A stretch of 63,668 nt of DNA, counting the filler, from Olpidium bornovanus S191 (Eukaryota; Fungi; Olpidiomycota): assembly GCA_017911155.1 (NCBI GenBank). It is 27 parts of 27 records of this genome, joined end to end, with 100 filler letters (N's around TTAATTAATTAA, not from the genome) between each part and the next. Parts side by side here need not be neighbours in the genome. Positions count along the whole stretch, not along the records: positions 51,754 to 54,050 come from JAEFCI010006520.1; 26 more parts are not named here. The stretch is one strand, 5' to 3'. The notes beneath the pieces are model-generated. The model had not been told where the DNA came from and did no database searches. It saw only the letters and a program-made list of their open reading frames with translations. The translations under genes were made by a program, and so were the position numbers. Below, piece by piece: positions 51,654 through 54,507 of the stretch (position 1 is its first letter; every line of letters starts with the position of its first letter).

Positions 51654-52021
51654 NNNNNNNNNNNNNNNNNNNNNNNNNNNNNNNNNNNNNNNNNNNNTTA
51701 ATTAATTAANNNNNNNNNNNNNNNNNNNNNNNNNNNNNNNNNNNNNNNNNNNNCGCTGGCTGTCAATCGGACAGGGGCTTATTTGGGCTCACGTATTCAG
51801 CAATTGTCAACTGCTTTAACCCCAACACCCGTGGTTCTCGAATGCAACTTTCAGCAATGCACGTTGATGTCATGCGCATTCCTTACGACTATGTGCAGGT
51901 AATGCAAACCCCTCGTGTTCCACGACCAATGGCTCCGGTGAATAAAACATCCGTGATGTCACAAACCTGTTGATATTAAACTGACGGCCCGGAGAAAACC
52001 GCGGCACAGTACAGGAGAACC

Positions 52022-53360
52022 TCAGCCACAATTGGGGAGAGAGTCTCCTTTGCCGAATGTGCGCCTTCTGGACGTAACGGCAACGTCTTCCTCGGTCTGC
52101 AAGGGCCAGGTCGAGCACGGAGGCAGACGATGAGCGATGACGGGTGACAGACAATCAACACGCTGTTGGAGGAAACAAAAACTTGGAATAGGAGCACATG
52201 GCACTTAACAGCTTCGTGGTAACACTGGATGCCATCGTACTTCTTAAGCCATTGTTCCAGTTGCTCGCCTTCGAGATCGTCTCCGGACTCCTCGTCGTCG
52301 ACAGGAAACAGCGGATCGTCGGCGTCTCGTTTTAGCTCACCTGAGTCGCCCACCCGCACGTCCAAGGTGGACGATCTCCACCGACCATGCTTCTTGCCGA
52401 CAGCCCGGTTGCGTCGACGCTCGCGCTGCAGCTCAACACTGGTGGGTTTCCAACCATTATATTTCTGCAGATTCCGCGAGCCAAGGAGTATCGCGACCTG
52501 CAAGGCGACTTCCTCAGGCGACTGCCAAAGGATGGATGGAGAGGGGAAGAGAGAGCAGCGACAGTCAACGAACACCCCGAAAAAGACACTAATGTAGCAT
52601 AAAACATGTTGCAAAGTACGAAACGAACGCTGGAAAAATCTAAAAGATATTCCCTCAGGCTTCCAACGTACGATGTAACGGCCGTACGTCAGGCGAAACG
52701 ACCTGTGCAGTTTCTTCCAATGTCCAACGCCGTATTTGCCGATTAAGTTGATGAGTTTCTGACGGTACTCAGGGATCCAGCGATTGTCCTTAAAAAGCCA
52801 CCTGGGATCAGTTTCCGGTTGGAAGAAACTGGTAGGAAGAGGCAAGATCACGTCAAAAAAAGGGAACGGTCAGAAGACGCGACCCACTGGGGAACACCGA
52901 CACCGCCGGGCTAAGCACCCCACTCAGCCTCACTGCTGCAGTGGGACAAATTCACCTGCACCCACAGTTGGTTGATGAACCCTGACTCGTCAATAGGGAC
53001 ATATCTCGTCCGCTCGGGCAACTCGCAGAATAGAAGCCTCGTGCGTCGGACGAAATCCTGCCTCTCGGTGAGTGGCCGTCCCCTCAGGATGGGGCCCACA
53101 CCCGGGGGCCCCAGTAACGCCGCACGGACCTGCGGGAGCTCGTCCTCGGACCAACAACCTTCCTGCTCGCCGGTCCCCCAGCCCTCGTCTCCGTCGATAT
53201 CAACTTCACTCTCGTCCGACCACTGGTCCCATTCCAGCGCGGCGTCGGCGTTCAACACCACGGGGTCAGCACCTTCTTCTGTGTTGCGGTGCCCGGGCCG
53301 CAAACGGGGAACCGGGGGCTCATCATCCTGCGGTGGTGCGCAGTTCTCATCCACAGCCAC
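52022..53360 (-). CDS. Myb/HTH-like protein resembling the p2 subunit of the MTA1c (AMT1) DNA 6mA methyltransferase complex
   Basis: Spliced: QDFVRRTRLLF...IDESGFINQ|LFFQP...RWIPEYRQKLINLIGKYGVGHWKKL...EEVALQVAILLGSRNLQKYNGWKP.S.EL.RE..RNRAVGKKHGRW. True start unresolved (the track start at 53360 is GTG). Last exon tentative. Confidence 0.7.
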
Positions 53361-54507
53361 GGCCCTGCACGCCGCACGCTTCTTGCCGGCGGCGCGAGCG
53401 GGGAGCCTGGGTGCGGCGGATGCGGCCTGTTTCCCTCTGCCGGTGCCACGCGTTCGGCGGGGCTGCCGTTAAGCCCGAAAAGCACGAGGGTTGTTCCGCG
53501 GGAAAGCCGCGAGCGGCGGGAAACTGAGCGTCAGCGCGTCTCCCTTTCCGCCTCGATCCGCCTTCTGAGGCGGGCGGCCGCGAAAGGCAAGCGAAACACG
53601 CTCCCGCCCACCTCTGCCCGCCGGGGCATGGCAGGTTCCCGTGCGCGGGGGGCGGGCGACCGAGTCACGACGCGCTCAGCCCCTTTCCTGCCGCCCCAGC
53701 TTCCCGCCTTTTACGACGGCAGGAGGAGACATGTAAGTACAGCCCCCGAAACAAAAACCAAATAAAAAAACAAATGCCCGGGGACGACCCGTTCTGGGGC
53801 TGTGAGATTTCAGTCAGGACTGATGGGCGACAGCTAGATGTGCGCCACTCCCATGGTCCCTAAACTGAGCAAACTCAAATAAATGCAACAGGCGCCAGAT
53901 ACGATCTCCAAATCATAAGGAAACCAGCCCATGTCATCAGAATTGCAAGCGCCACACCAGGCAAATCCAACAACGGCAATGGCGATTTTTTCAGGCCAAG
54001 AACAAGGTCACTTGCTACAATTGCGGCAAAAAAGAGAGCACATCGCGAAANNNNNNNNNNNNNNNNNNNNNNNNNNNNNNNNNNNNNNNNNNNNTTAATT
54101 AATTAANNNNNNNNNNNNNNNNNNNNNNNNNNNNNNNNNNNNNNNNNNNNCATGTTTTGAGTTGCACTGGAATTGACTACAATCGGTGGGCAGTGAGATT
54201 CGAAAGGACGGTGGCGACAGTGGCGACGGCGGATGGCGGCGGTGAGCGACCGGAAGGGCGGCGGCAGATGGCGGCGGTGAGCGGCTGGAAGGGCGGCGTC
54301 GACGGCGGGCGCAGTCGAGTCAAGGACTGCGGCGCAAGAGACGATGACGGAGTACGCCCTGCGACGGCGGCGGTGCGGAGGATGCGCCACTGAGTGAACG
54401 GCCGCGAGGGCGACGGCGACGCAGCTGAGTGAAGGCTTCGGGGCGGCGGGGTGAGGCGGCGAGAGCGCAGGACGTTGGCGCGCCGTCAGGTCCGTCAAAG
54501 TCCTGTC

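Follow-up and report, generated by a model that had tools for sequence, protein, structure and literature searches.

The small non-catalytic subunit p2 (AMTP2) belongs to MTA1c/AMT, a eukaryotic complex for DNA N6-adenine methylation, together with AMT1/MTA1, AMT6-7/MTA9 and p1. The p2 chain of the ciliate structures is built of three parts, with an N-terminal domain (NTD) of two helices, a Myb/homeobox-like domain (HLD), and, at the C terminus, a domain (CTD) made of one long and one short helix (PMC9174199, PMC12485025). Through its NTD, p2 binds the MT-A70 domain of MTA1, and stable binding of S-adenosylmethionine (SAM) by MTA1 requires assembly with p2 (PMC9174199), and the NTD mutants M21E/L25E and F42E abolish activity while leaving assembly intact (PMC12485025). 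The HLD of p2 makes no DNA contact, DNA being clamped by p1 (PMC12485025). A survey of eukaryotes has reported p1 and p2 exclusively alongside AMT1 (PMC12695648), and P1 and P2 have been described in early-diverging fungi (PMC12019607). Here we describe a gene of Olpidium bornovanus S191 that very probably encodes a p2 family protein acting with AMT1. The window, i.e., the whole stretch of DNA along which positions are counted, is 63,668 nucleotides long, and the analysis covered one piece of it, JAEFCI010006520.1, a stand-alone contig of 2.3 kb at positions 51754-54050.

We read this piece as an expressed nuclear gene for a p2 orthologue, and membership in the p2 family rests on architecture, profile similarity and fold. 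The gene is built of exons and introns and is expressed as spliced RNA, its domains are colinear with those of p2, and p2 is its best match in both sequence and fold. The original prediction, made from the sequence, had named it a candidate p2, and the homologue profile, the N-terminal helices upstream of intron 2, and the predicted fold all favour that identity.

A spliced gene with the three-part order of p2

Spliced transcript contig sets from two different studies (X1 and X3, word depth 76 and 34) were aligned to the piece. The contigs of both studies share one spliced molecule, which defines a minus-strand gene of five exons interrupted by four introns; on the plus strand all four introns read CT..AC, corresponding to GT..AG on the minus strand. 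The coding sequence spans 352 codons (1056 nt), from an ATG at 53629-53627 to a TGA at 52024-52022. Part of the stretch was also contained in 14 public runs from seven studies, 11 of which (five studies) share one organism label.

The p2-like domains lie on three exons in the colinear order NTD (end of exon 2), Myb/homeobox-like domain (exon 3), and CTD (exon 4). The end of exon 2 (52966..53066; minus strand, as are all features of the gene) encodes the p2-type NTD, ERQDFVRRTRLLFCELPERTRYVPIDESGFINQ plus a split Leu codon, which continues as FFQP in the next exon. Exon 3 (52672..52828; 1 nt and 52 codons) holds this last part of the NTD and the Myb/homeobox-like domain (RWIPEYRQKLINLIGKYGVGHWKKLHRSFRLTYGRYI). 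In exon 4 (52210..52521; 104 codons), the first 55 codons (52357..52521) encode the last Myb-like helix and the p2 CTD (SPEEVALQVAILLGSRNLQKYNGWKPTSVELQRERRRNRAVGKKHGRWRSSTL), the most family-specific part of the gene.

The original prediction had joined two open reading frame (ORF) fragments across a single GTGGGT…CCAG intron and had placed the gene at 52022-53360. The intron is real. It is intron 2 (52829..52965; 137 nt, GTGGGT…TACCAG), and the contigs of both studies omit exactly these positions, joining …DESGFINQ to FFQPE… through a Leu codon split as CT|T. However, the gene has four introns in total, and of the two proposed limits the left one stands, at the TGA, whereas the start moves to the ATG at 53629-53627 in a small exon 1. 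The quoted motifs are present, with DFVRRTRLLF and DESGFINQ in exon 2, FFQP…W.PE..QKL..LIGKYGVGHWKKL in exon 3, and EVALQVAILLG..NLQKY.GWK…N...GKK in exon 4. The layout that the original prediction gave for Tetrahymena p2 agrees with the chain sequence as well (…EDGALNHSYF…YWTPLNQKALQRGIELFGVGNWKEI…ELELRTCMILGINDITEYYGKK…NIAKGKK).

Intron 3 (52522..52671; 150 nt, GTACGT…TGGCAG, 45% GC), which is absent from the X1 and X3 contigs, lies between the Myb-like part and the EVALQ part. Because this intron is in frame and free of stops, a mechanical ORF (51976..52851) spans exon 3, intron 3 and exon 4, and holds both FFQPE…RWIPEYRQKLINLIGKYGVGHWKKL… and …EVALQVAILLGSRNLQKYNGWKP…NRAVGKK…. The ORF at 52911..53360, in a second frame, ends in …DFVRRTRLLFCELPERTRYVPIDESGFINQ. 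The split of the domain over three exons in two frames is the probable reason that gene callers missed the gene. For the searches described below, the queries were single exons or the natural ORF that continues through intron 3, and residue numbers of the full protein were obtained by arithmetic.

Homologues and profile comparison

An exhaustive phmmer (HMMER) search of 1.84 billion proteins, with exon 3, intron 3 and exon 4 as the query, returned 29 homologues (E-values from 2.5e-8 to 1e-3), with two colinear stretches matched. Most of them are 80-275 aa long, and three have 350-389 aa. They come from early-diverging fungi, Amoebozoa, CRuMs, Blastocystis and metagenomes, and the named ones, from Piptocephalis, Quaeritorhiza, Acaulospora, Clydonella, Diphylleia and Blastocystis, are annotated as "hypothetical proteins". 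The best homologue shares 38% identity with the gene, and no protein among the 29 is closer. A word-index protein search with the exon 3-intron 3-exon 4 ORF gave 118 candidates, none at E ≤ 0.01, a result that excludes only close indexed relatives of 160-509 aa. No close counterpart of the gene was found among ~15 billion public protein sequences.

A profile built from the 29 homologues (A1) was compared with the PDB sequences. Its best matches were Paramecium p2 (Ptep2, 7f4t_B; E = 2.6e-17, residues 15-127 of 128) and Tetrahymena AMTP2 (7f4l_B, 8xyl_D and 7yi8_D; E = 5e-17 to 8e-17, residues 23-134 of 142). The next-best matches were SNAPC4 (3.5e-9), p1 (3.7e-9 for 7yi8_C and 4.2e-7 for 7f4l_E), and TRF2 (~1e-5). 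On the gene itself, A1 scored 58.6 bits in exon 4 (positions 70-122) and 30.3 bits in exon 3 (positions 22-64), at consecutive profile positions, and gave no score on translated intron 3. The invariant family columns G, Y, N and W are kept in the gene (4/4).

Exon 2 gave no match to A1, since many of the homologues are N-terminally truncated and the NTD is poorly modelled in the profile. The end of exon 2, which was outside the phmmer query, matched the NTD of the Quaeritorhiza homologue P0012 (residues 85-119) at 17 of 35 residues (BLASTP, E = 1e-9). Furthermore, a dedicated NTD hidden Markov model (HMM) scored the exon-2 end at 15.1 bits, compared with ≤4.5 bits in 1000 shuffles.

The profile matches to p1 chains bear on a different identity, in which the gene encodes p1 (AMTP1), the second Myb-like subunit, or else a single adaptor of a fused p1/p2 type. 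These matches cover the Myb-like domain and the region that follows it, the length of 352 aa is close to that of Tetrahymena p1 (360 aa), the tail of the gene product has a predicted short amphipathic helix (EQLEQWLKKY), and some fungi have been reported to have only one of p1 and p2 (PMC12019607). However, A1 favours p2 over p1 by eight orders of magnitude, and its match covers positions 4-121 in p2, including the NTD that is absent from p1, compared with positions 30-110 in p1. A p2-type NTD precedes the Myb-like domain of the gene, and the exon searches of PDB yielded p2 and never p1 at E-values up to 10. In addition, the excess length of the gene is an N-terminal low-complexity extension and not a p1-like helix-turn-helix (HTH) with a long C-terminal region. 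We consider a p1-type identity very unlikely.

Direct comparison with Pfam and solved structures

In Pfam, exon 3 matched Myb_DNA-binding (PF00249) below the gathering threshold (16.9 bits vs 24.4, E = 0.0068) at profile positions 2-26, the domain being split by an intron, and exons 2 and 4 gave no match. Against PDB sequences, the top match of exon 3 was the SNAPC4 Myb repeat (E = 1.4e-7 over 30 residues, LIxLIxKYGVGHWxKI), followed by Terfa and c-Myb, and Paramecium p2 (7f4t_B) was a weak match (E = 0.17). Exon 4 alone had three versions of Tetrahymena AMTP2/p2 as its sole matches (E = 0.26, 47 residues), and the exon 3-intron 3-exon 4 ORF matched AMTP2 in two colinear stretches (E = 0.012). 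The exon-2 ORF part at 52968-53360 (131 aa) had no PDB match at E ≤ 10, the NTD giving too short a signal, which the low-complexity extension dilutes.

Taken by itself, the exon-3 result would suit an ordinary single-Myb/SANT chromatin or transcription protein (SNAPC4-, TRF- or CHD1-HTH-like) unrelated to adenine methylation. The weak Myb match is all that Pfam yields for the gene, and among the 29 homologues, 19-20 have a match to Myb_DNA-binding or HTH_CHD1_Hrp3. However, the similarity to SNAPC4 and Myb is limited to helices 1-2, and most of the family score comes from the flanking NTD and CTD (with exon 4 at 58.6 bits), which in PDB match p2 only. The original prediction had held that best matches to ordinary Myb/SANT or telomere-binding proteins would speak against p2; once the query exceeds the 30-residue stretch of helices 1-2, the matches favour p2. 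The probability that the gene belongs to such ordinary Myb/SANT proteins appears to be very low.

None of the 29 homologues matches a dedicated Pfam family, and the p2 family appears to have no curated family model.

Predicted fold

An AlphaFold2 (AF2) model was made for the exon 3-intron 3-exon 4 ORF, which contains 50 intron-encoded residues and lacks the NTD. The predicted local distance difference test (pLDDT) score of the model was 74 overall and >90 in the conserved helices. The top eight Foldseek matches were all chains of p2-containing MTA1 complexes (probability 0.97-1.0). With VIA-align, the model superposed on p2 residues 50-139, i.e., the HLD and CTD, with a Z score of 12.8 and a root-mean-square deviation of 2.0 Å over 90 residues (24% identity). 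The comparators were the p1 chains, with Z scores of 9.2-9.4, and c-Myb R2, with 3.6. In the comparison with MTA1c structures that the original prediction had called for, the p2 chains are thus the best match.

The superposition of the p1 chains is what a p1-type adaptor would also produce, but the higher Z score is that of p2 (12.8 vs 9.4). For an ordinary Myb protein the difference is larger (3.6 for c-Myb R2 vs 12.8 for p2). The amphipathic tail helix (EQLEQWLKKY) lies at model residues 185-198, with a pLDDT of ~57-65.

NTD contact positions and divergence

Positions of the Tetrahymena p2 NTD were mapped onto the gene through two alignments, and the mapping is indirect. By this mapping, the equivalents of R22, L25 and F42 in the gene are R, F and F, respectively. 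H39 is replaced by Q, which is the family consensus as well.

Several observations weigh against the assignment to p2. Compared directly with ciliate p2, the gene shows weak similarity (E = 0.012, with ~25-28% identity over the aligned parts), and the strong link to p2 depends on intermediate homologues, themselves unnamed hypothetical proteins. The sequence is divergent, with a best match of 38% identity and a very long tree branch. The nearly invariant Q of the family GRQNL motif is replaced, the gene having LLGSRNL, and the Trp before the S.xxLR motif, present in most homologues, is missing or displaced. By the same indirect mapping, M21 corresponds to T and Y41 to F. The AF2 model includes residues encoded by intron 3 and is without the NTD. 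Finally, the evidence is confined to the gene on the 2.3-kb piece. In the tree, from which four fragments of <100 aa were left out, the gene sits on its very long branch at the midpoint root, most forks are open, and there is no lineage placement.

A long branch, a divergent sequence and substitutions at the M21- and Y41-equivalent positions would be expected as well of a true p2 homologue that is decaying or re-purposed after the loss of AMT1, and the stand-alone 2.3-kb contig might come from an associated organism; in either case the gene would be uninformative on N6-methyladenine (6mA) in the labelled species. No read out of ~10 million sampled each from X18 and X24, two deep RNA-seq runs that carry the same species label, fell on the piece. 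This was not counted as a test, and the zero reads may come from a strain or condition difference, or from the contig belonging to an organism associated with the labelled species. However, the ORF is intact over five exons, and it is spliced and expressed at word depths of 34-76 in two studies. All four invariant family columns are kept, and one of the two coding-sequence differences from the transcript contigs is synonymous. Of the 14 runs (seven studies) in which the stretch occurs, 11 from five studies carry the same organism label, and p2 has been reported only alongside AMT1 (PMC12695648). Decay, re-purposing or an origin in an associated organism is highly improbable in our judgement.

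Proposed role of the gene product

As a p2 family protein acting with AMT1, the gene product would function as p2 does in the solved ciliate complexes. Its two N-terminal helices (…FVRRTRLLF…GFINQLFF…) would pack on the MT-A70 domain of AMT1, and the packed NTD would keep the SAM-binding and catalytic site of AMT1 in the active conformation. Beside the HTH of p1, the Myb-like domain and the CTD would pack on the N-terminal helix of AMT1, and p2 itself would probably make no contact with DNA. The complex so assembled would maintain 6mA symmetrically at ApT sites close to the 5' ends of transcribed genes.

Based on the ciliate p2 structures and on the indirect mapping of NTD positions, which gives Arg, Phe and Phe at R22, L25 and F42 and Thr and Phe at M21 and Y41, the gene product is expected to serve the organism's AMT1 complex as its activating and scaffolding subunit. 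The published co-occurrence of p1/p2 with AMT1, in which p2 is found only in AMT1-encoding species (PMC12695648), together with a p2 gene that is intact, spliced and expressed, predicts MTA1c-type 6mA at ApT in this organism.

The p2 subunit marks the AMT1/MTA1c pathway specifically, and the gene provides a handle for testing ApT methylation in the organism. It is also useful as an annotation correction and as a divergent sequence for better p2 family profiles. The current picture of eukaryotic 6mA is unchanged by it.

Terminal extensions

Compared with the p2 domains, the gene has two lineage-specific additions, a basic-then-acidic N-terminal extension of ~130 residues and an acidic C-terminal tail of ~70 residues. 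Most of the N-terminal extension is encoded by exon 2 (52966..53462; 165 codons and 2 nt). The first part of this exon (53352..53462) encodes a basic stretch, residues 7-43, which has 11 K/R and 0 D/E and includes GKKRAA. The middle part (53109..53351) encodes an acidic Trp-containing extension, residues 44-124, with 23 D/E vs 4 K/R, and bears out the long acidic N-terminal extension noted in the original prediction. Neither the basic stretch nor the acidic extension has a relative in Pfam or among PDB sequences. Judged by its composition, the basic stretch is probably a nuclear localisation signal serving nuclear import, and the acidic extension is probably disordered.

A more speculative proposal, which we regard as unlikely, is that the acidic Trp-containing extension of ~80 residues (…LEWDQWSDESEVDIDGDEGWGTGEQEGCWSEDE…) is a functional module, either binding histones (H2A-H2B or H2A.Z) or acting as a DNA-mimicking autoinhibitory segment, that would tie AMT1 activity to nucleosome-linker chromatin in this lineage; separately, the source organism may belong to a lineage without previous reports of the AMT1 pathway and 6mA.

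The acidic C-terminal tail, encoded by the remainder of exon 4 (52210..52356), contains one predicted short helix (…EQLEQWLKKY…) and has no detectable relatives. The coding part of exon 5 (52022..52096) consists of 24 codons (TEEDVAVTSRRRTFGKGDSLPNCG) and the TGA at 52024-52022.

Gene ends, introns and neighbouring sequence

Exon 1 extends from at least 53733 to 53612. Its coding part (53612..53629) consists of the ATG and five codons (MPRRAE) and ends in phase 0. The ATG at 53629 is the sole Met codon of the whole reading frame, exons 2-5 containing none; it is preceded by a G at -3 and, farther upstream, by a TAA in the same frame. Besides introns 2 and 3, the X1 and X3 contigs lack intron 1 (53463..53611; 149 nt, GTGGGC…GGCAG) and intron 4 (52097..52209; 113 nt, GTTAAG…TTGCAG). 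Alternative donors, CAG|GTCGTT (52702), CAG|GTGAAT (52955) and CAG|GTGAGC (exon 4), are not the sites used in the transcript contigs and were therefore rejected. If retained, intron 3 would add 50 residues inside the Myb-like domain without truncation; it is spliced out in the contigs of both studies. Its first codons (…YIVRW) resemble the …YLxxW motif of the homologues.

The 5' leader (53630..53733) is covered by contigs that reach 53733 (X1) and 53723 (X3), and the true 5' end possibly lies elsewhere. It contains an upstream ORF of 18 codons (MSPPAVVKGGKLGRQERG*) at 53676-53732 on the minus strand, with its ATG at 53732-53730 and its TGA at 53678-53676. This ORF ends 47 nt before the main ATG and might dampen translation of the p2 gene. 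The 3' untranslated region (UTR; 51754..52021) reaches past the edge of the piece, and the contigs cover 51754-52096 unbroken.

The X1 and X3 contigs show the same three differences from the assembly. The T>C change at 51835 is in the 3' UTR, the C>T change at 52702 is synonymous (AGG→AGA), and the G>A change at 53309 replaces Pro with Ser in the N-terminal extension. Together they look like a strain or allele difference between the source of the genome and the sources of the RNA.

At the far end of the piece (53892-54050), beyond an A-rich low-complexity stretch at 53749-53774, there are low-depth contigs from X1 only (depth 4-6), one of which has 28 unmatched letters where it diverges from the assembly, at 54016. 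An ORF on the plus strand starts at 53931 (MSSELQAPHQ…) and leaves the edge of the piece. It may belong to a neighbouring gene that is transcribed divergently and has a promoter region of ~200 bp in common with the p2 gene.

Comparison with known systems

The Myb domains of SNAPC4, c-Myb and TRF/Terfa resemble the gene in helices 1-2 (LI.LI.KYGVGHW.KI), over 30 residues, and have no counterpart of its NTD or CTD. The likeness to p1 (AMTP1; 7yi8_C, 7f4l_E and 8xyl_C) extends over the Myb/homeobox-like domain and the next helix (profile E = 3.7e-9). However, p1 has no p2-type NTD, and the leucine-zipper-like HTH by which it binds the N-terminal helix of AMT1, as well as its N-terminal DNA clamp, were not found in the gene.

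The unnamed p2-like homologues, which include KAJ3085523.1 of Quaeritorhiza haematococci, KAI9228513.1 of Piptocephalis tieghemiana and CAG8719554.1 of Acaulospora colombiana, share a series of motifs with the gene. These are W/F-V-R-x-M/T-R-L-x-F, LNQ.(Y/F)F.P and KYG(V/I)G.W, followed by LLG.(Q/R)NLQ.Y.GWK and …RN(K/R)A(V/I)G…G.W(K/R). Several of the fungal and protist homologues, of 275-389 aa, likewise have N- or C-terminal extensions, the N-terminal extension being acidic in the gene whereas it is rich in Ser, Thr and Pro in the homologues.

The p2 proteins of Tetrahymena thermophila (AMTP2; 7f4l_B, 8xyl_D and 7yi8_D) and Paramecium tetraurelia (7f4t_B) have the same three-part order as the gene. 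They differ from it in length (128-171 aa, compared with 352 aa), the excess in the gene consisting of the N-terminal extension and the acidic tail, and the gene has a few additional residues, some in the loop of the NTD and others between helices of the Myb-like domain. The p1 and p2 subunits have already been traced across eukaryotes and described in early-diverging fungi, and the gene is therefore best placed in a known family, as a divergent and previously uncatalogued member of p2 and not as a new kind of system. With the ciliate p2 proteins it shares …LN..(Y/F)F at the end of the NTD, (F/Y)GVG.WK in the Myb-like domain, and …(I/L)LG…Y.G.K…N.A.GKK in the CTD.

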